Assembly: GCF_001194135.2 (NCBI RefSeq)
Contig: NC_069001.1
Location: 39,313,201-39,377,200, forward strand
Direction: 5' to 3'
Length of the DNA stretch: 64,000 bases
Source of the DNA: Octopus bimaculoides
Taxonomy: Eukaryota
The notes beneath the pieces were generated by a model. The model had not been told where the DNA came from, searched no databases, and was given only the letters and a program-made list of their open reading frames with translations. Within the stretch, counting starts at the first letter, position 1. Each line of letters opens with the position of its first letter. Of this stretch, positions 1,661-63,810 are shown in pieces. The position numbers and the translations under genes were made by a program.

Positions 1661-1815
1661 GATACTGTGTAAATATACTCATCAAGTCAACTTTTGTTCC
1701 TCTACCGTTTTATGTCTGTCTGTCTGCTTGATTCTGTTTGTCTGTCTATCTATCTACACACCCATATGGATTTATATATATGTAAATACATGAATTGTAT
1801 AATCCCTCGTATTTA

Positions 1816-1911
1816 GTCTAATTACAATTTTACTTTCCATTTGCAGGTAAGTTGACTTGCCTCACTATCCACCCTATAGACCGAAGACGGTTGTAAACGC
1901 CAGGTAAGATA
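1816..1911 (+). promoter_or_regulatory. Candidate recursive splice site (AG|GTAAGT at 1845-1852) with 57-nt cryptic exon 1847-1903 and downstream donor GTAAGA at 1904
   Basis: gtctaat branch motif at 1816-1822, pyrimidine tract ttttactttccatttgcag, then GTAAGTT; second donor CAG|GTAAGATA. A similar cassette is at 13704-13800. Confidence 0.55.
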
Positions 1912-2204
1912 CAAGCTTTCAAATATACAAGCACACTCACTCACTATCTTTCTCTCTCGCTCTCTCAAACACACACACATACAGCTACGACTGCTTAGTT
2001 TATAGAGTCGAAGTTAGGCTTGTTTTATTCGGCGAAAATTGTGAGAGGGAATGGAATTACATTGGGCTTACACCTGTAGTTTGGAGAGGAAATCCTTGAG
2101 CAAAGGTTCGTGTCGTTGGCGGTGAGGATGAACTTGGATGTCATTCCAATAATTCTTTATCACAGCCTCTGACTCGTTTCCATACCACCTTTATGCTACT
2201 CTGA

Positions 2205-2205
<1 letters not shown>

Positions 2206-2272
<67 letters not shown>

Positions 2273-2285
2273 GTCTGTCTGTCTA

Positions 2286-2352
<67 letters not shown>

Positions 2353-2353
2353 G
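2206..2353. repeat. (TCTA)n-(TCTG)n tetranucleotide microsatellite running into N gap 2354-2484
   Basis: Directly visible. Confidence 0.95.
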
Positions 2354-2484
2354 NNNNNNNNNNNNNNNNNNNNNNNNNNNNNNNNNNNNNNNNNNNNNNN
2401 NNNNNNNNNNNNNNNNNNNNNNNNNNNNNNNNNNNNNNNNNNNNNNNNNNNNNNNNNNNNNNNNNNNNNNNNNNNNNNNNNNNN

Positions 2485-2527
<43 letters not shown>

Positions 2528-2622
2528 GCACGTGTGTGTGTGTGTGTGTACTTGCACATGTGTGCATGTATACATATGAATACTTACGTGTGGTGAGCAA
2601 GTGCATGCGAACACACACATAT

Positions 2623-2918
2623 GACCACTCCGTCGGTTACGAAAACGTGGGTCCCAGCTGATTCATGAAACTAACGTGCAAGTAACTGAACACTCCAGAC
2701 ACGTGTGCCCTTCACAACGTAGTTCTCAGGGAGAATCAGCGTGACACATTGTGACAAGGCTGGCCCTTTGATATACAAGTACTCCTCATTTTTGCCAGCT
2801 GAGAGGACTGGAGCGAAATAAAGTGTCTTGCTCAAGGACACAACGCGTCGCTGGGATTTGAACTCACGACCTTACGATCGTTAGGCGAATAACTTAATCA
2901 CTAAGCCACGCGCCTTCA
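2623..2918 (-). mobile_element. tRNA-derived SINE, family B, near full length
   Basis: Reverse complement begins GTGAAGGCGCGTGGCTTAGTG (A box)...GAGTTCAAATCCC (B box), then TGTGTCCTTGAGCAAGACACTTTA and tail ...GTAACCGACGGAGTG. A homologous copy is at 26168-26475. Confidence 0.8.
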
Positions 2919-2961
2919 CTGATGTATGTATATTATGTGTATATATATATATATATATATA

Positions 2962-3030
2962 TTCTATAGCCTCGGGTCGACCAAAGCCTTGAGTGAATTT
3001 GGTACACGGAAACTGAAAGAAGCTCGTTGA

Positions 3031-3067
<37 letters not shown>

Positions 3068-3285
3068 CGTGTGTGTACATGTTTATGTGTGTTTGTCCCC
3101 CTAATATCGCTTGACAACCATTGTTGGTGTGTTCATGTCCCCGTAACTTAGTGCTAGCGGTTCGGCAAAACATACCGACACAATAAGCACTAGGCTTACA
3201 AAGAATAAGTCCTGGGGTTGATTTACCCGACTAAAGGCGGTGCTACAGCATGGCAGCAGTCAAATGACTGAAACAAGTAAAAGAA
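2962..3285 (+). mobile_element. SINE family A, 5'-truncated, with internal (TA)n(TG)n
   Basis: CTATAGCCTCGGG..GACCAAAGCC..GGAAACTGAAAGAAGC, then microsatellite, then GCTTGACAACC..GGCGGTGCT.CAGCATGGC.GCAGTCAAATGACTGAAACAAGTAAAAG. A homologous copy is at 28420-28768. Confidence 0.8.
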
Positions 3286-4289
3286 ATATAATATATATAA
3301 ACTCTTACACGCATGTATATATTTACATTTGGTTGTTCGGATAAGATTTAACCGGGAGGGAGACATTGTTTCCTTGCGAAGGTTTTAAGTTAACAAGAAC
3401 CTAACTTCCTTTCGTGTAGGCCAGCCAACTGGTCTGCTATTTGTTTCTAATGTTATGAACTTACTTGACATTACATGTCGCCGTCTCTCCTTCCATTCTC
3501 TCACTTCTATTGCGTCTGGCATTCTGACAATATATACTTAGGTGTCTGGAACTGCTATCAAAACCTGGTCACAAGAATAAACTCTTGGATACCACCTTCA
3601 TTAAGGTTTCCTATTTCGAATGGAGGAATATCCGTGTTCATATGTGTGCGTGTGTTTATCTGTGCACACACCTACACCTTACTGTAGGATATAATATGGT
3701 AGCCAAATAATGACGTAAGAACTCCTATACGAACCTGTATATATATATATATATATATAATTAGAGATATACAGCGGTATCTCTGTATTTTGTTTTCCGA
3801 CACCTCAGCTGTATGAATAAGGTGAAAAGAAAATAGCTTTTGTCTGTAAAAATGTTTGAAACAATGAAGAAATTACACGTCCGAATCTATTGATTTCTGA
3901 AGGATTTCGTCAAGAAATCGATTATCTTGTGGAAATGGCAATTAATCACCTTCAGTTGCTGATCACACTGTTGTGATTGAAATGATAGAATCGGGACGGT
4001 GAACCTGTCAATGTGGACTAATGAGAAGCGCCCTCTGTACTACAACAACAACAACAAGTAAGAAACATCTTGTAAAACGTCGTAGAATTCACGAGAGGTT
4101 TCTATTTCGAGTTGCGTTCTCTGTGAAAGCCACGATTAACTTTCGATCGCAAACTGTTTTACAATTCTCCGATAGTTTGGCAAGTCTCTGAAGAAAATTA
4201 GGAGGAAAAAATAAAAATTAAATTTCTTTGGACGAACAAATATTTTGTTTCTCTTTGTTTTTTTTCTTATAGTTTAGTATCTTTTATTC

Positions 4290-5620
4290 GGACTTAGCTG
4301 GAACTTGTCCTAATCTAGCGGGCCTATGTTCAAAAATCTTCCATCCTTGACCATCCTGTGCTTAAACTCAATGACTACATTAATATGTCTTCGTTGATGC
4401 TGTGCTTGTTGTTTATTGTGGTGGTGATGATGATGACGGTGATTGGGATGATTCTCTTTAGCACACAGTTTGACTTGATACTAAAAACTTATGGTTCAAG
4501 TAACTCCAGCCGTGACCCTCACGTCTTTTATTTAGAAATACACTGAGCTGCAAAAGAAACGCGAGATGTATGTGACTGTGAAATATATTTCAATTTTATT
4601 ATGTCAGAGATAAATTTTAATAAGTCTGATAGTAAATTCGTTGGATGCACTTTGACCTCAGTCTATGGGTCGCGTTGTCATGCGTTCTAGTAGTGGGCGG
4701 ATCAAGCACATCTTGATTGTAGGGCGTGACATGTTCAAAACCGTGTATGCCCTCCCTGGGTGTTCAAAACTATACACTGTCAATGCATGGGGCGGTTCAC
4801 AAAAGCCATTGGTACTTGTGCCCACACTTGGAGGAAAGCTACCTCTAGTACCACACGTGTTGTCGGCTTTGAGACCACCTGGTTCAGCCGTCTCTGGGTT
4901 TAATTCATTCTACAGGTGTTCAATTGGGTTCAAATCCGGGCTGAGAGCCTGGCGGGCGGTGAGGACAAGCCCTCGAGCAGGACGGCGGCAACGCAGGCTG
5001 TTGCCGCTCAGTCGACGTCTACCGTGTTGCCGCTGTCCAATGCCAATGGTCTCTCGAGCTGTCACGCTGACCGGTCTGAAGCAATCACGGAGGTGTTGCA
5101 GGTGGATGAAGCGGTCCTGCGTTTTGGCGTCTCGTTTCAAGGGAAGTTGAAAAATTACTTGTAATTTAGGTCTCAGCCATAAACCAACATGTCTTACATC
5201 CCCGAAATTTTCACAATTTACCATATAAAAAGGACATTTGGAAAAATGGTGTTTCTTTTGCGGTTCAGGGCAGCGTGTCCAAGACTATATTGTCTAATGC
5301 GTATCTTGTCATTGTTTAGCAAAGACAGTCATATGATCCTGCAGTCACGTGATCGAATATATTCCCTCCGTGACCCTCCCATAATTTTGTCAGTCATAGT
5401 GTATCTGGGACTACAGTAGTTAAAACTAGTGGCTTTAGTCGTTGTTTAGCCCTAGGTCCGTCCTGGTCTAGCGGACTCATGATCAGAGATGTTCTAAACT
5501 TGAACATCTCATCTGGGAGTACATTATCTGGGAGTACATTATCTAACTTGTCCTTCTGAGACTTTGACCAAGAGTCAGGAATGAGATTGCTCAACATGCT
5601 AGAAATAACAGCCTATAACC
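4290..5620 (+). repeat. Cluster of fragments of an unclassified dispersed repeat (family D), interrupted by the Tc1 derivative
   Basis: Recurring modules tttagccc.aggt..tgatc...ttccagc.gtgacc and gactacattatctaatg...gctatttctagcagg, also seen at 16.5, 26.6, 30.9, 45.8, 46.0 and 48.9 kb. Confidence 0.55.
4541..5270 (-). mobile_element. Internally deleted Tc1-like DNA transposon with both TIRs
   Basis: TIRs CACTGAGCTGCAAAAGAAAC (4541-4560, preceded by TA) and GTTTCTTTTGCGGTTCAGGG (5251-5270), 17/20 match. Minus translation QDRFIHLQHLRDCFR...RRRLSGNSLRCRRPARGLVLT joined to ALSPDLNPIEHL*NEL, then QRRLN...QGGHTRF*. Confidence 0.85.
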
Positions 5621-6036
5621 TTAAAAGATTAAGTGGATGTATTGGATAATGAATTCTCTGAGATAGAGGATGGGTTGGTCACTCCTAAAATGTGTTTAAC
5701 CATTTACCAGTAATATCAATGTTGACCAAGATTTAAATAATAGCTTGGACAACTCATTAATTTTGACATCTGACCTAATGCGCACGCGCGCGTACACACA
5801 CACACACACACCACTGAGACACATGCTCATATGCAGAAAATCCCATAATACAGTGTGTAGAAGATATATACACACATAGAACTCTCAACAAACACACACA
5901 AGCACTGAACATAAACACATATACAGAACTGTGAACGGCCGCACATACATACACATAGAACTGCGTATGAATATATACACAAATACATATATATCTGAGT
6001 CTGGATACAGACACAACTCTTGGAAAGGGACACGCC

Positions 6037-6115
6037 CACACACCTGCACTCACCTCCACACACAAACACACGCACACACCTACACTCACCTCCACACACA
6101 AACACACGCACACAG
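6037..6115. repeat. 36-nt tandem duplication in CA-rich sequence
   Basis: cacacacct(g/a)cactcacctccacacacaaacacacg twice. Confidence 0.8.
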
Positions 6116-6552
6116 ACACTCAAAGACACAGCCTTGCACGTCTAACTTCAGTAGAATGTCAGTTGATTACTGGAATAAATTGAAAATCAATTTAATTACT
6201 TAATTAGTTAACCGTCTTGTAATGTTGTAATAATATTTTGGTCTATAAAAGAAACCATTAAAACGAAACCAACAGATTTTCATCAACATATTTCACGCTG
6301 TATCCGCGACATTTGTTATACATACATAAATGCATACTTTATATGTTTGCTTGTATATATATATATATATAAGTATATATATATATATATACATATACAC
6401 TACGCGCAGATGTGTGTGCATGTGTGTGTCGTAGAAAACCCTTTCGAAGAGGTCTTACTTGGTTACCAAGTTAAGAGGTCAATGGGTGAAAGAGAATCTT
6501 GTCTGAAACCTATGAGCCCACTTAAATGTCGCTGCATTCATTTCTTTTCTTA

Positions 6553-6597
<45 letters not shown>

Positions 6598-7742
6598 ATA
6601 TATATACCTCATCTTTACATAACTAATTCCTATCATAAAGACCACTCTTTCTAGTTGACGTTTTGTCTTTTCCTGCTTTTGTCTTTAATCGCCTGTCTTT
6701 ATTTATATTTATTTTCTATAAATTCTTATTTTCATTTCTTTTTTTTTTGTATTTAGTTTGCCTTAATAATCTCTTATCCTTTATGTTTTACTTTTATATT
6801 GTTAGATTTTGTATGGTATTGAATTTCATATTTTGCATACACACACACACACTCACCGTGTGTGTGTGTAATACATGCATTGTGTTTCTGGCGTTGCGCC
6901 AAAATTTGAAACCAAGATAGACGTGATGTTTCGTACTGCAACCCTTTGCTTTCGGGTGCAATTCCGTCTTTGCAGTTTATAATCTCTTTGCTAACGCTAC
7001 AAGTTCGAGGTGATCAAAGAGCGGGAAGTTAGCTTACCATTTTACCAGCTTTTTCCTAGTAAACTCTGTTGTTATCATGCACAACCATTTTCAAGCATGG
7101 GCAGTATTAATCTTCCCGTTTCCTTCTTAACCCAACCTCCCCAATTTTTCCTCCATCATTCGTCCGATTAATTTTTATCTGACGGTAAATGGAGGGCTAC
7201 AGGGTCTTCAATAAGGAACGCAGTTTGTAGATCGTGCAGCGGAATTATTTTCGCCTGCAGACTGCAGTGGCGTGAAAATCGAATCACCAGACTATCTCTT
7301 TCAGTTTCTAGAGAAAGAAAATCCTCCTCAGCATAAACTGAGTACTTCTCTCTCATTTCTTTCGATATAAACCAAGGTATATATGTTTATGTGAGTGTGT
7401 TTGTGTCATGTTCATTTATATCGTCATGGTACTATCTTCATTCTGCATTACCAACGGTTTTCCACTGTTTTTCTCTTTTTAAAGAATAAGGATGATTATA
7501 TCAGCGGTAAATAAAATTCTCTTATTTAACCTTGAAATGCGATGTAAAATGTTACCGACGCGCATTATGTTACAACAACAATTCTTTCCCCCACAATCGT
7601 TAGAATACTCAACAGCGAGAAAAACGCAGCAGCAACGTGGGAAATTTCGGCTTCCAGTAAATACATCGTTCTATTCTTAGTTAGGATTTAACTTTTCTTC
7701 CTCTCCATAATAATCACGTATATTCCTCCATCTATTCAGGCA

Positions 7743-7790
<48 letters not shown>

Positions 7791-9051
7791 CGTATGCATA
7801 TATTAACGCATGTATGTATGCTAGTATGTATGTATAATGAAAGTATTATGTAGAACTACACACACACGTACACACACACACATATACTTGACTATATTTG
7901 TATGAATATATAAGCATAAATAAATCTGGGAGTGTATGAATGCCTGCATGCAGCTAATTATGTATTTCTATAAACATCACGTGAAAGGTTAAACTAAAAC
8001 TCAAAGCAAAATGAGATAAAAATATCTTCGTTTTCATTTTTGTTTATGCATATTATCTTGTTAGGTCTCTTTGTTCTTTCGCTCGCCAAAATTAGTAAAT
8101 ATGTGTAAATAACAAAATTTCAAATAGAATTATATCTACATATCTGTATCTATCTATCTATCTATCTATCTATCTGTCTATCTATATATCTTTCAGTCTC
8201 TCTCTAATATGTACGATTGTTGTATTCTAGCATTCGATAAAACAATTCCGACCGCCATCATTCTCAGCGTTGCTCCGTTGTGTTCTTACACGCTTTGCTA
8301 ATGTTATTTGTTTTCCCCTGTACCGTATTCTCACTGGTCTAATTTTACCGACCAACGTCCTACCGCTTTAGCTACTTGATGCAATGTCTGCGGGGGATTT
8401 CTGGGCAGAACAAAAACTAATATCCATAACTAAAGTTGAAGACAGCGGAAATGACATTTATCCGAGTTTCTAGAATGGGATTTTTACGTGTATACAGCAA
8501 TTATGTGTATATAGACATATATTAGTATAGATGTGGAAACACACCCTGGAGTAGGCATGGAAAGTAATTATGATCTTTAGGGAAAATACGATTATTGAAT
8601 TTGTGTAATAGGTCTTGAGTGTAAACAGAATAATTGAATGAAATATCGCAATTTTATTAACCTAGATGTTTTGGATTTGAGCTTTTCAAAGAGAATTTAT
8701 AAGATGTTCACACTTTCTCCCATACAGCATTTCATTTGCTAAGCAGAACCTCATATTACTAATGGAAGCTGTACAGAAACGCTTCGAAATGGTGAATTGT
8801 AATACATTAGGCTATTGTGTTGTAATCTATACATCTTCACCAAGAACAACTTATGTTTATTCCGTTGAATATAAATGTGTATCCGTGTCTAGGAGTGTGA
8901 GTGTGTTCGTATCAATCGGGTTATGAAGGCGTATGTCTTTCAGTGTGTGTAAATGCGGTAGGCGGTTGGTTTATGTGCATTTATCTATATTCAGCAAATT
9001 ACATTTTTATGAATATTAGTGTGTGTGTGTGCATGCGCGCTCTCTCTGTGT

Positions 9052-9086
<35 letters not shown>

Positions 9087-9678
9087 NNNNNNNNNNNNNN
9101 NNNNNNNNNNNNNNNNNNNNNNNNNNNNNNNNNNNNNNNNNNNNNNNNNNNNNNNNNNNNNNNNNNNNNNNNNNNNNNNNNNNNNNNNNNNNNNNNNNNN
9201 NNNNNNNNNNNNNNNNNNNNNNNNNNNNNNNNNNNNNNNNNNNNNNNNNNNNNNNNNNNNNNNNNNNNNNNNNNNNNNNNNNNNNNNNNNNNNNNNNNNN
9301 NNNNNNNNNNNNNNNNNNNNNNNNNNNNNNNNNNNNNNNNNNNNNNNNNNNNNNNNNNNNNNNNNNNNNNNNNNNNNNNNNNNNNNNNNNNNNNNNNNNN
9401 NNNNNNNNNNNNNNNNNNNNNNNNNNNNNNNNNNNNNNNNNNNNNNNNNNNNNNNNNNNNNNNNNNNNNNNNNNNNNNNNNNNNNNNNNNNNNNNNNNNN
9501 NNNNNNNNNNNNNNNNNNNNNNNNNNNNNNNNNNNNNNNNNNNNNNNNNNNNNNNNNNNNNNNNNNNNNNNNNNNNNNNNNNNNNNNNNNNNNNNNNNNN
9601 NNNNNNNNNNNNNNNNNNNNNNNNNNNNNNNNNNNNNNNNNNNNNNNNNNNNNNNNNNNNNNNNNNNNNNNNNNNNNN
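9087..9678. other. Assembly gap (one of 10: 2354-2484, 9087-9678, 11804-12164, 20564-21163, 28087-28378, 29297-29368, 36000-36009, 51160-51596, 58098-58279, 59668-60285)
   Basis: Runs of N, mostly bordered by (TA)n/(CA)n. Confidence 1.
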
Positions 9679-10077
9679 ACACACACACACACAGGAAGAG
9701 AGAGTGAATGAATGAAAAGGATATGATGAAATGAAGTCTCAAGTTAGTCGTAGCAGAAAATGGTAAAAACACTGGGGACTCGGCCTAAAAAATATTCCGT
9801 TCAGTCGAAATTTTGAGAAAGATTTTCTTATACCAAAGAAAAGAAGCATTATGTTCTCAAAATTCTGAAATAAATTCTTACTTTTTATGTCCCCAACAAA
9901 AAACGTATTCTTCTTTGGCTTCTTTTCTTAGTTTGTGTAGCAATGAATTCTTGGTTGAATTTGCTAGGCGCAAGGCTAAGACATCTCTTTAGCTTGAATT
10001 TAGGACTGATGTTAATCTTTATTTGAATGACAATAGCCAGACAGCGAAAGAGAGATATGTATAAAGAGAAAAAGAGG

Positions 10078-10078
10078 G

Positions 10079-10146
<68 letters not shown>
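10078..10146. repeat. (GA)n microsatellite
   Basis: Directly visible. Confidence 0.95.
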
Positions 10147-10148
<2 letters not shown>

Positions 10149-10630
10149 AAGTGAGTACTCAGAACAGAAGTACCCGGACATTTGAGTCTTAATATGAGCT
10201 AATAGCTTTGTTTATAAATTCAGCGAAATAGCTGACGCGACGCGAACCTTGACTGTTCCAGAATGTATTGCACCTCTGGATCGAGTATGTTATGAATATA
10301 TCAATCATCGTAAAAACGAAAATATGATTTCCTATGACGTGAACAACAAAGATGAGCATAAATGCGTTCAAATCTGTCTGAAGGTCTTAATATTAAGGAT
10401 AAATATGAGATCCATCGTTTCAGATCTCAGCAATCACAGTGCAAATTACACACATACAGACACACACATACAGACACACACATATATATTAAGTGAGGGA
10501 GAAAGAAGCAGCTGTAATGTTGAGCATGCGTAGTATTAATAGGAAAGAGAATTATTAATGCTGCGCATGCTCACCATTTCAGCTGCACCTTTTGTTTATC
10601 ACCGCCAGCATCATCATCGTGATACACACT

Positions 10631-10670
<40 letters not shown>

Positions 10671-10824
10671 CAGGTACACACGAACACACATTTACGTATA
10701 TGTACTTATATTTAATGGAATATACACATGTGTATATTCACACGCAAGTGTTTCTCTGAGTATGTAAATATACAATTGTACTCTTTAATTTCTGTGTATG
10801 TCCACATATAGGGAAATATGCTCT

Positions 10825-10860
<36 letters not shown>

Positions 10861-11765
10861 CACACACACCCACACACGAAATGCCAATTTACGAAAGTAA
10901 TGACCCGTAATATTTTGTAGATATATACACACGCACATGCACAGATGATTGTGTGCGTAGGTCTGTATGTGTGTACGTATATATTTAAATATGTGTGAGC
11001 ATTTGTATGTAAATGTGTAGCTTAGTGCGTGTGTATGTGCAGCGTTTTCTCTCGCCGCGACCACGTGTGCGTGTGTATATATATGTGCATATGGATATGT
11101 GTGTATGTATAGGCGTATATATGTGTATGGATAGTTATGTATATGTGTATTCAATACATTTCTGAGTGTTGAATAGAGTTGAATACCTCAGAATTGGTCA
11201 TTTAATTTAGTGAAAGGAAACATTTCGAGACAGAATTACTGTATCAATAGTTGTGTGATGTTTATATAATGTATAATACCGAAGTAATAGAGGATAAAAT
11301 ATACAACAGTCGGACTAATGTAATATACAATGTACCGCTTGAAACACAATAAGCTATTTAACGAGAGGCTGACTCTAAAAACAATCTCTCTCTCTCTTCC
11401 ACTCTCTGTCCCTCTCACTCTCTGTCTCTCTCCTGTCCCTCAGTAAATAACAAACATTGTCATGGAGAGAATCTTAATTATTTTTCGGTTCTGTATTTTG
11501 AGTATTTACTTTGGCAAAGTGTCCCTCTTGGCAATATTCCAGTGAAATCCTAGAAATGTTGGCGTGAAGGTATTAGAATATTTAAAAATATTTAAAAAAA
11601 GAAAACCCTTTATGTGTAGAAAGCAATGAAATTATTTAAATAAACCAGTTTTAATATGGAACAATATTTAATGGAATTGAAGCCAAAATTATGGCTCAGA
11701 CTAAGACACCGAAAATCCCCGCATTTAGCTGTGTAGTGTGTATGTAGTTAAGTATACATCATGCA

Positions 11766-11803
<38 letters not shown>

Positions 11804-13703
11804 NNNNNNNNNNNNNNNNNNNNNNNNNNNNNNNNNNNNNNNNNNNNNNNNNNNNNNNNNNNNNNNNNNNNNNNNNNNNNNNNNNNNNNNNNNNNNNNNN
11901 NNNNNNNNNNNNNNNNNNNNNNNNNNNNNNNNNNNNNNNNNNNNNNNNNNNNNNNNNNNNNNNNNNNNNNNNNNNNNNNNNNNNNNNNNNNNNNNNNNNN
12001 NNNNNNNNNNNNNNNNNNNNNNNNNNNNNNNNNNNNNNNNNNNNNNNNNNNNNNNNNNNNNNNNNNNNNNNNNNNNNNNNNNNNNNNNNNNNNNNNNNNN
12101 NNNNNNNNNNNNNNNNNNNNNNNNNNNNNNNNNNNNNNNNNNNNNNNNNNNNNNNNNNNNNNNNTATACATACATATAAGATTTGTTTAAATGATTGCAA
12201 GACAACTACAAGATGTTTCATAGGCACTCAGCTCTGGGTAGACGCAGGCTTACTTATAAAAGACACAAATGTAAACCAATGAAATGGATTACCTAACTCC
12301 TGTTGTTTTGTCATTCATTAATTGATGTAAAACTCTGTATTGATCTGGCGGGTTATTGTAAAGTATAACTACATTAAGTTGTAACCACTGATTATTATTA
12401 TCACTATACCCATACAAATACATATTTGTCGATGAAGAACTGAATGCAAATGTGGAGCGCAATAATTCATTTAAGCCGGCTCCGTGGTCTGTTACGCCGG
12501 AGTTTCGAGGGCATGTGGCCACTTTTCAGAGAGGTCAAATTGGTCGAAAAGACACGTTACACCAGACCAAATGTGGTTGCAATGCAGTGGATACTGTTCA
12601 CTACCCTCGAAATTCTGTTTTACCCCCAGAGCATGGCACAAATCATTGCCGCACACTGGGATCGATCTTCATATTCATTTTGTTGCAAACCTATTATGTC
12701 AAGCGAAATTGCAATGACTGCACCCAGTTAAAAGAAGAGGTTTCTTTTGTAATTGTTTCTTTTGTAATTGAGTCTAAAACATTAGAACGATTGTGAATGA
12801 AACGCTCAAGGGGGGAATTGGTGGTGTTGATGATATTTTACGAACGTCTATTGCTACAGGGAATAGCATTTGACAATGTCTAGAGACATTCAACTGACAT
12901 GAAAGCCACCTTTAACGAGATCAAATGAATGTTTACAAGCTGAAACATTGACGTACTCTGTGTATTTCAACCACTTCTGAATAAGACCTGAACTGAAGAC
13001 AAAGAAGCGAGGCGGACAGTTCTGAAATGGTGTCGGTATAACATTCAGTCAGTTGGAGAAGCGAATAAATGGAGAAACGAATAAAGTTGATTAGATCAAG
13101 GGAATGTGCTTTGGTGGAGGTCATAAGTTCGCCTCACAAACATGTTGCATTCCGCACTAAATATTCCACGATAGTTTCTCTAGCATTCAACCGATTTTCT
13201 CATCTGTTGCCCTCCCCTTTATAATTATAACAATAAAAACTACATTAATATAATTAATATTATTAAAATTAATGGCTCTCTTAACATTATTGTTTCTATT
13301 TGTGTTGTGAATATTCATACGAAGTAACTTACTATCAATTATTGACTTCGTACAGTGAAATATATGACTGGCATTAGGTTTAGGTATTTATTTATCTCTG
13401 TATGTATGCATAAATAAATATATACATATCTATGTATCTATTTGTGTGTACATATACACAAACACACATACATATATAAATATATATGTGTGTATACATG
13501 TATATCGCCAACATCGTGCATACAGACACACATATATATCTGAATGTGTAGGTATGTATACATTTACATGTATATGTATACACGTTTATATATGTATACG
13601 CATATATACACAAATGTGTACATATACAAATATATCATACACACACACACATACAATATAAAGTATAACAGTATCTTTTCCTCTGCATATTCTCTCTTTA
13701 TTT

Positions 13704-13800
13704 GTCTAATATTAATTTTCTTTTCCTTTTTAGGTAAGTTAATTTGCCATTTTTCTCCCTATACAACTCGAAGACGAAGTTTATTCCCTCAGGTAAGATA
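13704..13800 (+). promoter_or_regulatory. Candidate recursive splice site (AG|GTAAGT at 13732-13739) with 59-nt cryptic exon 13734-13792 and downstream donor GTAAGA at 13793
   Basis: gtctaat at 13704-13710, tract ttttcttttcctttttag, then GTAAGTT; second donor CAG|GTAAGATA. Same spacing and shared internal motifs as 1816-1911. Confidence 0.55.
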
Positions 13801-14654
13801 AGTGTATACACATACACACACTCATACACACACACTCACATACATACACACTCACACACATGTATGTATATATATATATATATATAGATAGATAGATATT
13901 TATGATTACATGTATATATACAACCACACACACACACTCATTCACACACATATATTCATGATTAATATAATTTCCTTATTTCAATTATTCTAGCACAATG
14001 AGGAACATTTGCTAAATTATAGCAGATGAAATGTCAGTTGATGTTTGAGGAAGCGGGTGAGAGAAGGAAAGAAAGAAAGAAAGAATGTTGTGGGCGTTTG
14101 TGATCGAGAGAGAGAGGTGCGGGAGTGAGAGGGAGAGAGAGAGGGGGGAGTTGGATGTGAGGCCAGTAATGGAATAATGCATAAAAGGAAGGGAATTTAA
14201 TTGTAAAATAGTTGGGGCATCAGCGGGGAATTAGGTGCATCGATCTAGGCGGGTGAGTTGTGATTCATCCGATTGGTTTTTGTAAGAAAATAGTTGGGTG
14301 GAAATAAGGGAAAGAAAATGTAATGCTCGTCTGATAATAGCTTCCCGGTGAACTGCTATTGGTCGACAAGAAATGGCGTGGAAACGGAAGTCATTCACAT
14401 TTATGGACTCGATTTGACTGGTTGATCGGATAAGCGAATTAAAATATTTGTGCGATTTAAAACCATTTAAGCAAGCAGGAAGTCTCTAGTTCAGAATGGC
14501 ATTTTTGAAATGCATGATTGAAAATTGTTCGTGATTCAGAAATGCAAACTACATTTAGACTGTAAGAATGGGAGAGAGAAACTATTCCTCACTTTGCCAT
14601 ATATGGCAAAGGGAAACTATTCCTCACTTGACGAATCAGATTGAGAGTTCCCTT

Positions 14655-15072
14655 GTCGTTTGACGAGAATTTGGTTTAATCGCTCTTAATCGAACTCAAC
14701 TGGACGGCCAGAACGAGGTGCGTCTTTGAGGTCAAAATTTCCATTTTTAAACCTGGCATACCAATCACGACCGGTTCTTTCAGCCATGGCACCCTCTCCA
14801 TACACAGCACAAATGTCGCAAGCAGCTTTTGCAGCCTTAGAACCTTGATTAAAAGCAAAATGAAGGAGGTGTCGAAAATGCTCGTTTTTCTTAACTTGAC
14901 ATTCCATCTTAATGACCTGAAAATAAACAAAAATTAACTAAAATTTAACTAGAAAAAAAACAAAACAAAAAGCAAAATAGATTCCAAGATGATTCAAAAA
15001 TAGAATTCTCGAAGAAAAAAATAGATTCCAAAATTTAAAAAAAAAACGGCGGGAACTTAGTTGCCAACCCAA
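14655..15072 (-). mobile_element. Mariner transposon left end: TIR plus N-terminal HTH region of transposase, truncated
   Basis: ORF 14686-14907 MECQVKKNEHFRHLLHFAF...ICAVYGEGAMAERTGRDWYARFKNGNFDLKDAPRSGRPVEFD is a Mos1-type N-terminus. TA-TTGGGTTGGCAACTAAGTTCCCGCCG terminus (minus strand) at about 15046-15074 resembles mellifera-type TIRs. Confidence 0.9.
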
Positions 15073-15699
15073 TATATTAAACTGTTCATTCCACCGAACA
15101 TTTGAAGGATAGAGTTATTCCTCTTGTGAATATATTTTGTTTTTCAAACGTTAATATTTCCCAATGCAGGAGTTTTATTATGGAAGCCAATCTTTTTCTG
15201 ATTTATTTGAACTCAACTGTTCTCTGAAATCTTAAATTGAGTTACTCCAAATATTTCAGATTTTCTCCTATTGATTGATCTGTCGGAGGTCACCACGATA
15301 CTCCTTCACCCTTTTCTACCCCATTTTACAATTTTCTATGCTACCTACTTTATGGACGCACACACACACATACACGCTCATGCACACACGAATGATTGAA
15401 CAAACGAAAGAAAGTAGTACCGAACATATTTAGTAGAAATTACATATTTTTAATAGCAGTTTGACTCAGCTTAAAGTTTCTCGGATGAGTATAGACAGAC
15501 AGACAGACGGACAAGCATAGAGTGGGATGTTTCCCTTAACAACTTGGGAGACGAAACTAAAGCAATGATGACTGCCAATGCTTTCAACATTATCAAACGT
15601 TTCTATCACGCTTTCTCAAACACTGAGTTCTGTGTGTTTAGTGCTATCCCTATTCCATTACAATAGGTGTGTTAAGTTTATTCCTACTGACACACACAT

Positions 15700-15750
<51 letters not shown>

Positions 15751-16514
15751 CGCATACACACACATATGTAAGTTGTTTTCCCTGTATATAATTTTATTTA
15801 CGTGTTTGTTTGTAATTGCTTTACTATTAAGTTTGATCTTTGACACGATAAAGGTTGCCATAAATGTGTACTTAAATGCTAAACTGCATCTCGATAGCGG
15901 TAGTTATATTGGTCTGTAACATTTGAGTCGTCGTCTCGCCATATTTTTATTATAAAGAAGCGCTTTTGATCTCAGTGAATAAATAGATTCGGAAGAAATC
16001 CGTGATGATGGCCGCTGTCAAATACCAAATACACCGAACATAAAAACAAAGCTACAGAATTGAATAAATTAGTTTTCTGCCAGAAATCTGAAGCGACACG
16101 TTAAAGTTCTCCTCTCCCTTTCGATATAAACGTTTATTCCAGTTTGTGGTTTTTCATTTTAGCTTTCTCTGGTTTCATTTCATTTACGGCAATTACTGGA
16201 GACGCTGATTTTAACAACGTCAAACAACAGAATCCAGAGAATCGGTTTTCGGTGCTGTTTGATTGAACTAAAATTAATTCGAGGCAGCACATAGCAGATC
16301 CTGGAATGAATAGACATGGTAAGGGGTTAACGATAGATGTTCAATAGGCAGAAAATAATGAAAATCAATACTTATCGAAATGAGAAGTCGCCCTTCAATG
16401 AAACAGTCAATACATCAAATATGTTCGATCACCATGACAATCAATCAGATTTATCCAAAACTCGTCAAATTCGTAATTTCTCCCGAAAGAGACAAAAGAT
16501 GGCCAAGTAATCTA

Positions 16515-16690
16515 TGCATTCGCTTGACCTCCTAAAACTAGCAGCTAAATCTCTCGCATCTCACACTTTATCGTGAAATGATGGAGAGAATGTTATGTTT
16601 GGATAGTGTGAAGTTACATAGACTGTATCAAAACCCCAAAGACGCGATGATCAATACTGGAATGTCTCCATCATAGTTCTACGTGATCAG
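16515..16690 (-). repeat. Family D dispersed repeat fragment
   Basis: gacctcctaaaactagcagctaaatctctc...gatgatcaatactggaatg is the reverse complement of the family D modules. Confidence 0.55.
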
Positions 16691-16744
16691 TATTTACCGA
16701 TGGTCAACAAACCCTGCCTACTTATATATCATTCGCCATGATAG

Positions 16745-16936
16745 ATCGCTAGCCACGAAACCTTTTTTCTATTTTCTCTCCCTGTTTCTTTCTGTGTTCC
16801 TTTCTGTCGAAGAGCGAAGGGTCGAAACGTAAAAGACTTTCTCACTTCCCAAGCGTTAAAATAATATTTGTTTGTTGTTTACTCACCCGTCTTCGTTTTT
16901 CTGTTTTTTTTTGTTTTTTTTTTTGTAAATTCTCAC

Positions 16937-16940
<4 letters not shown>
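16745..16940 (+). mobile_element. Possible Penelope-like element end (pseudo-LTR) with degenerate minimal hammerhead core at 16807-16831
   Basis: tcGAAGAGcgaagggtCGAAACGTA resembles CUGANGA-G..C-GAAAC-GUH; it is followed by a T-rich tail ending at a (TA)n tract. Confidence 0.45.
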
Positions 16941-16971
<31 letters not shown>

Positions 16972-17364
16972 GCACACAATGATATATATGTATTCATATG
17001 TATACATACGTATGTACATGCAAACAAACACACATACACACTTATAGAGCTGTCGGATCTCTACGGAAAATGCCGTAAACAAATGAATGCTCACGTGCCA
17101 AATAAATTTCCCGGAATTGGCCGATAGTTTCAGCTTTCAAATTTAACAGTTTTCTAATGTTACCAATAATCACTATTTATTTCTGCTGCTAATCTTTCAA
17201 GTAGGTTGTAGCTGAAAATAATATAATCTCGCAATGAAAAATTTAATGGATGCTGAAAAATCAATGACTATAAAATATTCCTGTGGACAAACACATTTGA
17301 AGTTCTCGACTATCAATGCCGTGCCATCATCTTAATCGCCATTTTTACGTTCTCTTGTCTATAG

Positions 17365-17442
17365 GCGTTGCTGCTTTTCTGTGTAGTGGTATCTACCTCC
17401 TTTTAAAAGCTACAAAAGCTGAGATATTCTATAAGCGACTGC
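17365..17442 (+). CDS. Candidate 78-nt symmetric (phase 1-1) exon of unknown host gene, GVAAFLCSGIYLLLKATKAEIFYKRL
   Basis: Acceptor ttttacgttctcttgtctatag, donor GTATGT, stop-free, hydrophobic. No family recognised. Confidence 0.2.
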
Positions 17443-18249
17443 GTATGTCGTCACCTTCTTATCCGATTCAGTGGATATTCATGATTGCGTTGGGGCAAGT
17501 ACTCGGCGCTGCTTAAGGAGTTAACTCCGGTTCATTATTGCCGAAGTCATGCAAGAAATGTTAGTCTAATATGGTTTCAATAAGATTTTCTTAAATGATT
17601 ATGCGTTGGTTTGGAGGAAGGTACTGGACCAAAAACCTTCAGAGATCCTCCGACGCAGAGACGCCGATAAAAATGCTATTTTGGAGGGTAATCAAGTATT
17701 TTTTAACAAATATATCCAAATACGATAACTTATCTCTGCTATATTCCACAGTAGAGTGGTTGCTCTTGTTAACACTTTATGAAAGTCTTGAATTGAGAAA
17801 GTCTATCGAAAACTTCTTTCAAATAAGAAAATACAATCCTCTTAATATTCCTCCCAACTTCTCATTGAATGTACTTTAGAACCCCTTGTAATGTGTTTTG
17901 GAAACAATACGATATTTTCGAAAATGTAATAAGGCCTTTGGAAATAATTTTCGTGAATCAGGATTTCGGTGCATTTTTTTGTATTTTGAAATGATTTCAC
18001 TCTAATAATGTGATCGGGAATTAATTCACTGCAATATAAAAGGAAAAATGCATTTTCTTATTTTCCACAACGCATACACATATACATACACATGATATAT
18101 ACATACATACTGTACTTATATATGATGTATATTATAATATAATTTATATATATTATATGTATATAGGTATAAGTATATATATATGTATGTATATGTGTAT
18201 ATGTATGTATGTGTATATGTGTGTGTGGGTGTGTATGCGTGTGTATAAC

Positions 18250-18308
<59 letters not shown>

Positions 18309-20497
18309 ATATATATGTGTATATGTATGTACACCTTTTTGCAACTTTGCGCAGGCCTCTGAGCAGTTATCTCCATGGCATTTTTCTCTGTCATGGCCAA
18401 TGCGACGATCACACGCTACACACTTTCCTGCTGTAAACAGGAGAAGTGAGCTAGAAAGTTAAAACTTAGTGCCCATGCACAGCAGAATTTAGGGTCAATC
18501 TGTGCCGGCAACAGTTTGGATACTTATTGATCAGACCTCGTATATGTATATACAATTACGTACATACATATGTACATTCATAAAACGCACACATAAACTT
18601 TATGGTCTGTGTTTCTTGTGTTCTTATTGTACAGATTCGATGAATTGCCAATAAATTGGAGAGATCAAAGCGTTTAAAATAAGTACATCAGATAGCGCAC
18701 AAGGGGTTTTACTCGGTTAAAAATTCCGAGTGTGTGATAGCTGTTGAAATAAGGTTCCTGTGTCTGTGAGGGTATCTAAATAATAATGATTGTATAGAAA
18801 AAATAGTACAATGACAATTATTTTATATCTGTCTACGATTATATGTCTGCATATTCCAGACATTTATTTGACAGATTTCGAAACCGCAAATAGCGTCAAT
18901 TCATTTTAAATCCAGCAGACTACGGTGACTTATAGAATATATACAATAGTATATACAATATCAACAATGGTATATTACCAGATTCAATAGAATCTATTTG
19001 GAAGTGGTAATAAAAGTAGATCTAATGTAATATAAATATATTTGCTGTGGAGGGAAAAAAATATCTACATTTTCGATATTAACCATTTTTTATGATAAAG
19101 GATAAGAAAGCGAGAATTGACAAGGAAATCTCCACTTGCTTATTATAAAGAAGAGGTAGTTATGATAGCAGAAAGATGTAGATAGATCTGAAGTCAGTGT
19201 TGTGTTGCTGTTTATCTATGAGTCAACTGTAGTCCACCAGGCATTTGAACAAAGACTCTTCTGTTTCTCTCACTTCTCTCTTCTACGGCTACATTATTTA
19301 TATAAGTTGATAAGATTATGATTTGAGGGAGATAAGGCTGGTATTTCTAACAGAAGGATACTCTGCCATTGGCTCGTTCTCATGGAGATAATTGTGGTCT
19401 GAAATATGCGATATGCTCTAAATGGAATATATTTCGCCTGTCGACAGGTCGATGACTTGTGGAAGCTCTTATCAAATCTCCATTGCATGTCGTTTTATAA
19501 CAACCATCCTTGAAATACAGGAGAAACATAATAATTGCTTAAATGTTGAACATGTCTGGACTTAAAACGTAACGACTCTATATTTAGAATGGAAGAAAAG
19601 TTTGGTATAGATGCAAGACAGACGGCATGGTAATGGAAATGTTTTACTTGAAATAGGAAGAATTTTGTGAAAGCATTTACTAGAAAAATTGAGATGTTAA
19701 TTACGTCGGAAAATTCCATTATAGAATGGATTCTTTAAGAGTTTTTACACTCGCCGGTTTCTTCGGTTTATAGTTCCAGTCGTCATCTTCTCAAGAAAAT
19801 ATACTTTGAACGTTTAAGTAAAGTTTCCTCACACGAGTACAACTCCACGTATTTACTTTTTGAAATCCAATATTTCAAACGGAAAATACTTTATATAGTT
19901 TTGTTTTCCAATACTATTTAATTTTTGTCTAGTCCATGTTGTCATTAAAATTAGTTTAATGTTAGCAGCTATCTAATTTCAATTAGAGTTTCTCATTTAA
20001 ATTAAACTTGTTTCTCACATCGGTATTGAAACGAGTAAATATTTCCCTGCTCCATAAATGTCGACAAACTTATTAACTATTTCCTATAAAACAATGATTG
20101 AAGCTAACCTGACAGTATTGAACCTTCCACCAGTTACACCTGACTACCAATTTTTACCCTTCCTTTTCACATATCAGTAGTTGTCTCACGTCCTACCAAT
20201 GCTGAACAGTTGATTAATTATATATCTTTTTTCATTATTATATTGCCTGGCAGTAAAGCTAGACAGTCGCAGCCTGTTATCTTGCAAACAAACACGGAGG
20301 GTGATAATTTATAAGTTCATGTGTTAATCAGTTAAATATTGGCTTCGCCATTCTATGACGTCATACCAAGATTCCATGTTGGATTTGCAGAGGAGAAATG
20401 TGATGCGGCGTCAGATGAATTGTTGCATTCGAACTGAATTTTTTAAAAGTTCAATCGATATTTTCTTACAATTACTAGTTATGACATATACATACCT

Positions 20498-20563
<66 letters not shown>

Positions 20564-36520: not shown

Positions 36521-37446
36521 CTTTCGTTCTAACACACTTTTATTGAGACAGAACGAGAGGTATTTGATACCAAATTAAGAGCAGTTTTGAAATAATGTTC
36601 AAACCATTAAAGATAAAGTGATAATTCTATTGAACCACCAACTACATAGGAAATGACGAGAGAAGGTTAAAAAAAAAAGATGTTGTGATTGGTTGGAATG
36701 TAACCAATCCTATTCCGGTAGATATGTGAATCATTTTGTTATGATTCACGTGTCAGATCCAGAGAAGTCAAATTGATCAATGGATACCGGCCTCTTTTGT
36801 ATGTATCAAAATCTACAATTGCAGTGTGTTTTTACTTATTCAAGATTCTAGGCTGCGGTTCGTGGGAAGCTTTTGGAAGCAAGTTCATTGTGCAATCGCT
36901 GTTTCAACCACGATATCTTTCAAAAGGTTATTGTATTGTTTTGCGCTGTGTGTTTGTTGTCAATATTGCCTTTTAACCCTAAGGCAGCAGCTTGACAAAA
37001 TCGTTGGCACGTCGGACAAAATGCTAATCGGTATTTCTTCCGGTTCTTTACATTCTGGAATCAAATTCCGCCAAGATCGACTTTGCCTTTCATGTTTTGA
37101 GATCGATAAATAAAGTACAAGCTGAACAATGAGGTTGAAGCAATCGTTTTCCGTCTCACTCCAAATTGGTGACCTTGTACCAAAATATGAAATCATTTTG
37201 TGTATAAAAATTCTTGCAATATTTAGAAAGGTGACAATTTCTGAATCACTGTTTCCATACAAATGACAACAGTATCTGCATGGTTTTTCATTTCTTGTAT
37301 TAGCTTTCTGTCTCCCAAAGAGGACCTGAAAGAAATAAGTTTTTTTTTTAATTGGTTTTTATTTTCATTCTCCTCAAATATCCCTCGCACATTGTATATA
37401 TGAAAACTTAATAAAACTATATGTATAAAGATTGAAGTTAAAAATG

Positions 37447-46445: not shown

Positions 46446-48376
46446 AGGAATGTAAAGCAGCTTAACCCCCTACACAAACACACAGGGCTATACACACACA
46501 CACGTCTATGTACAAAGACGGATGGATATAATCAGATAAAAGAAAGTATCGCATTGATTGTCTTTATTTTAAAAACAATCAATACGATACTTTTATCAGT
46601 CTGCCAGGGTCTGCAAAGATCCACCTCCAATTCCATTCATTTAACTTTCATTTCAGTCAGTTCCATCCGACTTAAATGGCTACTGTAACCGTCTCACAGA
46701 TTCTGTTCCAGTTTTAATAGCTGCTTGTTCCTATTACGAATCATTTAGTCATAATTAATGCGAGAGCAGACCGAATCATTCCCTGAATATTCTCGAATTA
46801 TGAAAAAGTCCAAAGTAATAAAATATGCTGCCAGACCAAAGTTATGATTTTACTGGTTGCAATCGGTAAGAGTTGGAATATCAAAATAACCAGAAGCTGC
46901 GCAATAAAATTGGTTGATTTTCGCCAAGGGATGGAATATTTAACAAAGATTTAACTCTGGAAACGGTTGGAGTATCATAAATACAAGTGTCTAATAATAA
47001 TAATAATGATAATAATGGTGGTGGTGCTGGTAATAATGATGATGACAATAATAATAGATAATAACGGGGTTCTTCGTAACATGGAGTCTATTTGGAGGCT
47101 TTTCATATAAACAACCGCTGGATATTGCTTAGCACAACTAAAATAATGTTTGCAAGATGTGCGTATGTGTCTGTTTGTCTGTTTGTGCGTATGCAAAGAA
47201 ATGAAATAAATGACAAGGGAACCAGAAATTACGCAATGAACTCCATTGGCTTGCAGCTGTTTCAGCTATCGGATGCAATGCACTCATAGCTAAGTGCTGT
47301 GTTTCACCTTATAGCTTCATCAGATTTGCAGAATCGATACTAATCAAAACAAGTAGTGATACAGAAGAAATAACTGAAGTTTAAAATGCACAGAAATTAT
47401 AAGATTAATTTTTTTTTTTAAATACACTTAACCGCTTTTCCGTTTGAGTTTCAAAAGTGTGCGATATTTGGAGCTGTGTCACAAACTGTATTTTTCTGGC
47501 CGTTGTGCTAAAAGTCGTCTGTTTTTATAGAGTGAATGTGGTTCAGATGGCTATCAGTTAACGTTGAGATTGATTGGTTGAGGATGGTCAGGTGTTCGAG
47601 ATAAGGGAGTGCGTAACTTATGCATTCAAAATAACGATGTAAGATTCGATAATTCTCCAGAGAAATCATTCCGTACCGACGTTAGGCCGTGAAAATTACA
47701 AATTATGTCGGTAGACGAAACTTTCATCAGTGGATGGAACGGTTATACCACGTAATTTCAACATACACTGCGCTTTCTCAGTAACAGGTGTCTTCCCATC
47801 GAATGCCAAATCGAAAATTCCTCAAACCGATACAGTTTAACATTTACTAAACACTCATTGATGTGGAAAAAAAAAAAAGCTGTCAGGCTGTGAATAAATC
47901 AGTTACTAACGAAGAAGGCAGCCTTTGTAACGAATCTTCAGTAGCACATCCAACCTGAATTGGAAACGCAACCTACGCTAAAATCACGCGATACAATCGT
48001 CCCATCCGCTGGCGCTGACGAAAATTTCGTCTGCCGATATAATTTATGCTTTTTATAGCAACTAACATCTTAATGAGAGGATTTCTTAGGACGATTACCG
48101 CAGCTTATTGCGTTCTAAACAACAGATCCAATTTAAATTGGATGCGCTAATTAATATTTATTACAAAGGCTGCTTATGACGCTAATAGCTAATATATATA
48201 CGCGCACGCACGCACGCACACACACAGACACACACACACACACACACACACGTCTCTCTCTCACTCATTCACATTTATATTGTCGTGTAGTATGTTATTT
48301 TTATGGAATATAAACAGTCAAAATATTAGCTACGGTTTCGCGCCCACTATTGTGCTTGTCAGTATAAATGACTCTT

Positions 48377-48593
48377 TTAAAGGCAGCGCGCTGGCAGAAC
48401 CATTAACAGGCCGGGACTAATTCTTAGCAGCATTTCGTCTGTTATTACGTTCTGCTTTCAGATTCCGCAGGAGTCGACTTTGCCTTTCATCCTTTCGAGG
48501 TTCGATAGAATAAGTGCCAGTTAATTAATACAGTCAATGTAATCGACTTACCCCGATATTGCTGGCTTTCTGCCAAAATTTGAAATTACTATT
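48377..48593 (+). mobile_element. SINE family E, full length, with 10-bp target-site duplication
   Basis: AGGCAGCGCGCTGGCAGAA head, central GTCGACTTTGCCTTTCATCCTTTCG..GATAGAATAAGTGCCAGT, tail TGCCAAAATTTGAAA; aatgactctt at 48367-48376 and 48594-48603. Confidence 0.85.
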
Positions 48594-48650
48594 AATGACT
48601 CTTCAGGTCAGCCGGTCAGAGACGCGAAGCCTCTTTTACGCTGGAAGTAA

Positions 48651-48727
48651 ATATTCAGCCCTGAAGCGTCGTTAATATAATCAAGTGCAAAACTATGCTG
48701 GACACCGTCAGGAACTTTCTGACCGGT
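48651..48727 (+). repeat. 77-bp segment duplicated at 50493-50570
   Basis: 4 differences over 78 aligned nt. Confidence 0.9.
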
Positions 48728-50492: not shown

Positions 50493-50570
50493 ATATTCAG
50501 CCCTGAAGGGTCGTTAATATAATCAAAGTGCAAAACTATGCTGGAAACCGTCAGTAACTTTCTGACCGGT
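50493..50570 (+). repeat. Second copy of the 48651-48727 segment
   Basis: Direct alignment. Confidence 0.9.
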
Positions 50571-61560: not shown

Positions 61561-61840
61561 TCGATGTGGAACTTTTTTCTGAGGAGATATTTCCGGATTT
61601 AGCGCGCAAAAACGAAGACTTTTGAATCTTACCATAAAATATAATTTAATAGAACCGTACACACGTGCTTCCCTTGTGGCGTACAACTTAGTGTGCGATC
61701 AGATACATTGGATTTAACCAACGGTCTGTACTGATGAGAAACAGATATTTTCGGTAAGAAACTATTAATTTCGAAACATGTTTACAGATAATTGTATTTT
61801 TTTGTGCAAGTTTCACTGGTCTTGCCCGTTTTACGTTTTA

Positions 61841-63304: not shown

Positions 63305-63810
63305 ATTATTCAACTACTACCGCAACCATAGGATGAATTTGATCAGATAAAATGCTTAAACAGTCTTGACTATTAATTCTGCCATGAAGGGAAACCATTG
63401 GGCCAGCGGATTTCCAAGAAATAGCTCCCCAGTTCATCACAGATACTACTCCATGTTTAACAGTTGGAAGAAGGCAAACTGGGTCAAATGTTTCTTTTGG
63501 CTGTCTCCACACGTATACTTGGCCGGTGGTCGGAAATAACGTTCTTCCACTGCTCTAGGGACCAATTCCGTCGGTTTTTACTCCACTCTAAATGCTTTGC
63601 AACGTTTGTTTTTGAAAGTAGTGGTTTTCTGATTGCAGCCCTTCCATGGAATCCGGCTTTGTGCAGCTCCCGACGAACAGTTTTTGTGGAAACTGGATTC
63701 TCGAGGTGGTCATTTAGCTCTGCACTGAATTTGGGAGCTATACTTATGTGATACTTTCTAACAATTCGCGTAAGAGTCCGACGGTCCCTACCTGAAACTC
63801 CTGTCTGTTT
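63305..63810 (-). mobile_element. Tc1-like transposase fragment (HTH2 to mid-DDE), frameshifted
   Basis: RDRRTLTRIVRK...VSTKTVRRELHKAGFHGRAAIRKPLLS...WKNVISD / VWRQPKETFDPVCLLPTVKHG..SVMNWGAIS...GRINSQD.LSILSDQIHP. Confidence 0.9.

Follow-up and report, generated by a model that had tools for sequence, protein, structure and literature searches.

A stretch of 64,000 nucleotides (nt) of Octopus bimaculoides DNA (NCBI RefSeq assembly GCF_001194135.2, contig NC_069001.1, positions 39,313,201 to 39,377,200 of the forward strand; below called the window, in whose numbering all positions are given) contains two related units of about 117 nt, A at 1796-1911 and B at 13684-13800, both on the plus strand. 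Each of these cassettes is composed, in the same order, of the branch-point-like motif GTCTAAT, a pyrimidine tract, the junction AG/GTAAGTT, an insert of 57 nt (A) or 59 nt (B) and the 5' splice site CAG/GTAAGATA (direct reading and script; the slash marks the junction). The units are rare, they are homologous to each other, and the identity between them is concentrated on the splice signals. At the sequence level, paralogous exon-definition units of the recursive-splicing (RS) type, i.e. a ratchet point followed by a short cryptic RS-exon, are the best fit to these features and a partly supported one. That A and B are real recursive splice sites is a tentative reading, to which we give somewhat less than an even chance.

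Anatomy and rarity of the two units

Published RS-exons are about 50 nt long, show little conservation and for the most part do not keep the frame, with ultraconserved acceptor/donor motifs (PMC8605326). Both units possess a juxtaposed acceptor and donor (pyrimidine tract, NAG/GTAAGT) with a sequence match to a branch point at the normal distance upstream, and in both a downstream 5' splice site ends a putative cryptic exon of nearly the published length. The pattern of a conserved acceptor/donor beside a poorly conserved, out-of-frame or stop-bearing exon is seen as well, in the comparison between the paralogues. The initial annotation, made from the letters of the window, had listed these motifs with their positions, and they were found again base for base by direct reading and by script. 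This includes the branch-type A 24-25 nt before the end of the AG (25 nt in A, 24 nt in B) and the common insert blocks TTGCC, CCCTATA and CGAAGACG, the last of which stands at insert position 36 in both units. A stop in phase 1 of the 57-nt insert, as described there, turned out to be an understatement, stops being present in all three frames; the 59-nt insert shifts the frame as claimed and has stops in frames 1 and 2 in addition. A coding exon is excluded by these stops and the frameshift.

The acceptor/donor junctions read TTTGCAG/GTAAGTT (1840-1853) in A and TTTTTAG/GTAAGTT (13727-13740) in B. The intron part of the candidate ratchet donor, GTAAGT with T at +6, is better than that of the downstream donor, GTAAGA with A at +6, while positions -3 to -1 of a regenerated donor would be set by the upstream exon. 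Each unit carries two near-consensus sites for the U1 small nuclear ribonucleoprotein (snRNP), 57-59 nt apart. The coordinates of all elements are collected in Table 1.

A crude composite score was used for ranking which adds an acceptor matrix, the six intron bases of a donor after the AG and the best donor 25-120 nt downstream. With 28.6 and 26.9, respectively, B and A take ranks 1 and 2 among the 305 AGGT sites on both strands of the window, and the next best site reaches 21.9. When 300 first-order Markov windows of equal composition were scored, one reached at least 26.9; the best composite score in 142 kilobases (kb) of other Octopus DNA (three species, both strands) was 23.7. Furthermore, AGGTAAGT, AGGTAAGTT and CAGGTAAGATA occur exactly twice each in the 64 kb, always on the plus strand and inside the cassettes, and AGGTAAGT has no occurrence outside A and B on either strand. 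A chance origin of the cassette signals was rejected on account of the uniqueness of the motifs, the score ranks, the Markov windows and the 142-kb Octopus sample.

Table 1 Positions of the two units and their elements within the 64-kb window
Feature	Position	Strand	Remarks
Cassette A, whole unit	1796-1911	+	blastn vs B; nhmmer profile E=3e-32; homology stops at these borders
A, branch-point-like GTCTAAT	1816-1822	+	CTAAT matches CTRAY; 7/7 same as B
A, branch-type A	1821	+	25 nt ahead of acceptor G (G1846)
A, pyrimidine tract and acceptor ...TTTGCAG	1823-1846, AG 1845-1846	+	acceptor score 7.0, approximate matrix
A, GTAAGTT, candidate regenerated (ratchet) 5' splice site	1847-1853	+	adjoins AG; AG/GTAAGT 8/8 same as B
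A, candidate cryptic RS-exon, 57 nt	1847-1903	+	stops in all three frames
A, insert blocks TTGCC; CCCTATA; CGAAGACG	1857-1861; 1872-1878; 1882-1889	+	
A, downstream 5' splice site CAG/GTAAGATA	1901-1911	+	donor score 11.3, in the window's top 15 donors; 11/11 same as B
Cassette B, whole unit	13684-13800	+	blastn vs A; nhmmer E=2.9e-28
B, branch-point-like GTCTAAT	13704-13710	+	A at 13709, 24 nt ahead of acceptor G (G13733)
B, pyrimidine tract and acceptor ...CTTTTTAG (tract end TTTTTAG)	13711-13733, AG 13732-13733	+	acceptor score 8.7
B, GTAAGTT, candidate ratchet 5' splice site	13734-13740	+	adjoins AG
B, candidate cryptic RS-exon, 59 nt	13734-13792	+	frame-shifting length; stop codons in frames 1 and 2, frame 3 alone open
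B, insert blocks TTGCC; CCCTATA; CGAAGACG	13744-13748; 13757-13763; 13769-13776	+	
B, downstream 5' splice site CAG/GTAAGATA	13790-13800	+	same motif as A; donor score 11.3

Some smaller features of the units were observed in addition. The second junction of B, TTTATTCCCTCAG/GTAAGATA (13780-13800), has a moderately pyrimidine-rich lead-in and resembles a weak acceptor-donor site; the counterpart stretch of A, GTTGTAAACGCCAG, is not pyrimidine-rich. The TTGCC block of both units can base-pair with the ratchet junction (1845-1862 and 13732-13749). In A, AGGUAAG can pair with CUUGCCU over 7 bp including one G-U pair (loop UUGA), and in B, GGUAAG can pair with UUUGCC over 6 bp including two G-U pairs (loop UUAA), a C-to-U change preserving the pairing. 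Masking of the regenerated 5' splice site by such a small junction hairpin is conceivable, but a lead only, given just two sequences and no excess fold stability. The block CGAAGACG, whose GAAGA core resembles a purine-rich splicing enhancer, lies in a possible mini stem-loop, ACCG-AAGA-CGGU in A (1880-1891) and CUCG-AAGA-CGA(A)G in B (13766-13779); in these two sequences the outer pairs are changed on both sides between the units (C-G versus U-A).

Common descent, uneven identity and copy number

In a blastn comparison A and B are 72% identical over 121 nt (E about 9e-8), with no similarity outside 1796-1911 and 13684-13800. Flanking sequences are unrelated and rich in microsatellites, as the initial annotation had stated, and the surrounding kilobases are without collinear similarity. 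If the GTAAGT and CAG ends are removed, the interiors of the inserts still align with a score of 11 in comparison to -8.6 +/- 3.6 for shuffled sequences (z about 5), a value reached by 0 of 2000 shuffles. Between the units, the 20 nt ahead of the branch motif can be aligned as well (p=0.0025). Since the insert interiors and these 20 nt align above shuffles, A and B are paralogues, homologous by descent as judged from their sequences. On the same grounds a convergence of motifs without common descent was rejected. A duplication of haplotype or assembly origin was rejected in view of an identity of just 66-72% and by the unrelated flanks, and a larger segmental duplication is contradicted by the missing collinearity past the edges of the units. 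A tandem-repeat origin with a period of about 58 nt finds just weak self-similarity (p=0.11 in A, 0.012 in B).

The identity is unevenly distributed. All 26 signal positions are the same in both units (GTCTAAT 7/7, AG/GTAAGT 8/8, CAG/GTAAGATA 11/11) versus 52 of 92 (57%) elsewhere, made up of the pyrimidine tract (14/22), the upstream part (13/20) and the insert interior (25/50). For the core signal columns, identical in 22 of 22 cases, a hypergeometric P of 3e-5 is obtained, given 78 matches in 118 columns overall. This pattern between the paralogues suggests selection on splicing signals and not on coding capacity. In addition, the borders of the homology coincide with the span from the branch-point region to position +8 of the donor.

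An nhmmer profile built from both units found no third copy in the window and 0 matches in further Octopus DNA (142 kb, three species), which sets a 95% upper bound of about 1 copy per 47 kb; for a cassette spread as densely as in the window, the probability of zero matches would be about 0.009. The sample consisted of loci of O. bimaculoides GCA_001194135.2 (L004, L006, L007), O. sinensis GCA_006345805.1 (L005) and O. vulgaris GCA_951406725.2 (L008), reached via annotated Octopus genes that match proteins of the window derived from transposable elements. The repeat families of the window at 2964-3297, 36980-37215 and 48375-48595 have 8-10 matches each in 81 kb of this sample. As judged by these counts the cassette is not a high-copy repeat. 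A high-copy transposon fragment, named in the initial annotation as an observation that would speak against its reading, is thus not supported, and a low-copy family is still compatible with the data.

No target-site duplication was found at the cassettes, and neither RNA polymerase III boxes nor tRNA-like sequence was found in them. Inverted repeats near the ends of the units are 71-73% complementary and lie at non-homologous positions. A recognisable transposable element, i.e. a short interspersed nuclear element (SINE), a miniature inverted-repeat transposable element (MITE) or a fragment of a long interspersed nuclear element (LINE), was rejected for want of hallmarks and of homology beyond the unit of about 117 nt. 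Searches with Rfam at gathering thresholds gave nothing in the window, and at E up to 10 nothing on the cassettes and just weak, microsatellite-like microRNA models on the flanks. Both strands of both units, as well as the inserts alone, fold no better than shuffles (z -0.75 to +1.4). Because of this lack of excess fold stability, and with no Rfam match on the cassettes, a structured RNA such as a minus-strand U1-like or other small nuclear RNA gene or a mirtron-type hairpin is ruled out.

A pattern scan of metagenomes returned one match, a 69-nt satellite with 32 copies (L003, 372-2577; JGI Ga0268261_10030591). Its unit also contains, differently ordered, CAGGTAAGTT, CCCTAT, GGTAAGATA and GAAGACG. 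It was rejected as unrelated, being without BLAST similarity to the window or the Octopus loci, and the likeness is not significant if rotations and the mode of discovery are counted; chance and the way it was found account, in our judgement, for the resemblance. Two further contigs from ENA (L001, L002) have just a Tc1 element in common with the window and were left out of the genome sample.

Genomic setting

Three assembly gaps lie between the cassettes (2354-2484, 9087-9678 and 11804-12164; 1084 N in total), and A and B are located on different contigs of the scaffold (1-2353 and 12165-20563, respectively). Both cassettes are clear of the gaps, as 443 nt separate the end of A from the gap at 2354 and B starts 1520 nt past 12164. 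Reading frames are not affected by the gaps, since the sequence concerned is non-coding. Because the units sit on separate contigs, their spacing of about 11.9 kb and their arrangement on the same strand depend on the scaffolding and hold only as far as it does. Microsatellite arrays flank each of these three gaps, on both sides at 2354 and 9087 and on at least one side at 11804. Most of the 10 gaps of the window adjoin microsatellites, namely (TCTG)n/(TG)n, (TA)n/(AC)n, (CA)n and (TCTA)n/(TA)n, and these breaks look like read-through failures in simple repeats. A gap of 10 N is located within a CTCTCTCATC repeat at 36000.

In the 64 kb no coding exon of a host gene was found, either by comparison of open reading frames (ORFs) of at least 50 amino acids with Pfam or by a scan of open segments with a good acceptor and donor. 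The only Pfam matches of these ORFs in the whole window are two transposon domains on the minus strand, a mariner HTH_48 domain at about 14.7 kb and a Tc1 HTH_Tnp_Tc3_2 domain at about 63.7 kb. In the exon scan cassette B itself was the second-best candidate, and none was convincing as a coding exon. Exact look-ups of 12 ORFs of the window and a protein search with pooled ORFs from around both cassettes yielded no match to this locus or an orthologous one.

The repeats of the window are of several kinds. At 1228-1760 on the plus strand a frameshifted C-terminal fragment of a LINE ORF2 with the motifs ...SETWT..RKRLE...TQ.AMER... and ...NKRWTRAVAEW... is found; it is followed by a (TCTG/TCTA)n tail which ends about 40 nt before cassette A and has no counterpart at B. 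The mariner match belongs to a decayed element (14642-15077, minus strand) which shares 87% identity with a copy at locus L004 of O. bimaculoides, and the Tc1 match to a decayed Tc1-like fragment (63309-63990, minus strand). A further Tc1-like remnant with the motif ...LSPDLNPIEHL is located at 4660-5284 (minus strand). Interspersed, probably SINE-like repeats exist at 2663-2777/26173-26359/57813-58096, at 2964-3297/28511-28808, at 36980-37215 and at 48375-48595. Many interspersed repeats are common to the window and O. bimaculoides loci, with up to 95% identity (CM046602.1), and fewer are shared with O. sinensis; this points to Octopus, most probably O. bimaculoides, as the source of the window. 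Moreover, two 84-nt sequences at 61838-61920 and 62434-62516, 92% identical and about 600 nt apart, form an inverted repeat pair that could be a foldback or MITE-like element, and a 78-nt direct repeat of 95% identity is present at 48651-48727 and 50493-50570.

Proposed recursive splicing, its alternatives and known systems

The mechanism proposed here is modelled by analogy on Drosophila and vertebrates. The plus strand would be transcribed as part of a very long intron, in which the cassette would be read as a small exon by means of the GTCTAAT branch point, the pyrimidine tract, the AG and the strong donor CAG/GTAAGATA 57 or 59 nt further on; the purine-rich CGAAGACG may serve as an enhancer. 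Joining of the upstream exon to 1847 or 13734 would rebuild a 5' splice site, (exon end)/GTAAGT, and this rebuilt donor with T at +6 would out-compete the downstream GTAAGA donor. The stop-laden insert would then leave with the next intron segment, so that the intron would be removed in pieces of about 10 kb. Transcription, its strand, the host gene and the use of any of the sites are what we infer. The nominal spacing between A and B is close to the mean recursive segment of flies, 9.1 kb (PMC6110457). For the recursive-splice reading of the initial annotation, the defining sequence features of junction, branch point and cryptic exon (PMC8605326) are present in both units and the conservation pattern is as expected. 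Its other part would place the window in a giant intron.

Several points weigh against recursive splicing. The exon-free window equally fits a giant intron and intergenic DNA, and the base skews, near zero after masking of simple repeats, are uninformative on the transcribed strand. The splice matrices are our own approximate metazoan frequencies and were not trained on octopus. The pair came to notice since both copies carry the motif, the signal columns, above all the branch point, were partly picked after inspection of the data, and constraint was judged from two paralogues. In addition, for the recursive sites of flies or vertebrates no paralogy with conserved internal blocks has been described.

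The main alternative, in our opinion rather unlikely, is a neutral relic: A and B would derive from a low-copy repeat or an old local duplication, as pieces of an ancestor that possessed splice-like motifs by chance, and they would not be used by the spliceosome. There are just two copies, and the window is dense in repeats and microsatellites, including the tail of the LINE fragment that ends shortly upstream of A. Weak, imperfect inverted repeats are present near the ends of the units, and the 142-kb sample is compatible with a family of up to tens of thousands of copies. However, a relic should decay evenly, which is at variance with the concentration of identity on the signals (P about 3e-5). 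Both copies share borders that correspond to the functional span of an exon unit, although two sequences are a thin basis for either argument. The inverted repeats are located at non-homologous positions and the target-site duplication and polymerase III or tRNA-like parts of a mobile element were not found. Moreover, a single full cassette is already an event of about 0.3% per random window, and true high-copy families gave their 8-10 matches in 81 kb of a sample in which the cassette gave none in 142 kb.

Ordinary duplicated cassette exons (non-coding, 5' untranslated or poison exons) of an unannotated transcript which are conventionally spliced, the GTAAGT at their start never acting as a donor, are unlikely. 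Each unit is a complete, strong exon with branch point, pyrimidine tract, AG and strong donor; purine-rich CGAAGACG is kept at an equal offset in both, and the stops and the frameshift suit a poison or non-coding exon. On the other hand, conventional splicing gives no reason for a perfect GTAAGT at the exon start, and GTAAGTT is kept in 7 of 7 positions versus about 50% in the adjoining interior. Known exons of this anatomy, the 'expressed RS-exons', are themselves substrates of recursive splicing (PMC8605326, PMC6224609).

Quite improbable is another cis-function, in which clustered U1 snRNP sites keep premature cleavage and polyadenylation away from a long transcript, or intron removal is delayed by decoy exons: two near-consensus U1 sites per unit are in line with it, and access to the first of them could be adjusted by the small hairpin kept in both units (AGGUAAG/CUUGCCU in A, GGUAAG/UUUGCC in B), yet this function leaves the conserved branch point, pyrimidine tract and AG unexplained, and the folds are no more stable than shuffles.

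A wider proposal that goes beyond the recursive use of A and B is possible but doubtful. According to this, giant introns of cephalopods would be removed recursively, and the cassettes would multiply by local duplication during intron expansion and be kept by selection on their splice signals. Whether the regenerated donor or that of the cryptic exon is chosen may be tuned by the hairpin of GGUAAG with the UUGCC block and by the purine-rich element, which keeps a fixed offset.

Octopus genes have very long introns, and the basis of their accurate removal is not known. To our knowledge, recursive splicing has been demonstrated experimentally only in flies and vertebrates. The initial annotation knew of no such description for cephalopods, and likewise no literature linking recursive splicing with octopus or cephalopods was found in the searchable library. 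If use of the sites is confirmed by RNA data, A and B would provide the first case of recursive splicing to be described from a cephalopod. A validated octopus ratchet point would extend the mechanism to lophotrochozoans, and the paralogous pair would show one route of origin, duplication followed by selection on signals. The cassettes supply exact coordinates which can be checked in existing total-RNA data, namely 1847 and 13734 for the junctions and 1821 and 13709 for the branch A.

Three known systems can be compared with the cassettes. Exonised interspersed repeats, e.g. antisense SINEs, are likewise short repeated units with a pyrimidine tract, an AG and a donor. Unlike these, the cassette is without further copies in the window and the 142 kb of Octopus DNA and without SINE or MITE hallmarks, and its identity is concentrated on splice signals. 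The RS-sites and RS-exons in long neuronal genes of vertebrates (Sibley 2015; RS-exons repressed by the exon junction complex, Blazquez 2018) were defined from RNA data and the cassettes from genomic sequence. They resemble the proposed scheme in that the RS-exon is defined first, followed by competition between the rebuilt 5' splice site and the donor of the RS-exon, and in that inclusion would add stops. Intronic ratchet points with cryptic RS-exons are also known from Drosophila (Ubx, kuz, Bx; Duff 2015; Joseph 2018/2021; Pai 2018). In contrast to these, the octopus pair consists of candidate sites which are mutual paralogues with the common internal blocks TTGCC, CCCTATA and CGAAGACG. In common with the fly sites, a strong acceptor abuts a GTAAGT donor, and a cryptic exon of small size, about 50 nt in flies and, as a candidate, 57 or 59 nt in octopus, is ended by a second strong donor. 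In both animals the content of this exon shows little conservation beside invariant acceptor/donor motifs and carries stops or breaks the frame, and the setting is long and exon-free, with a spacing of the octopus pair near the mean segment of the fly.

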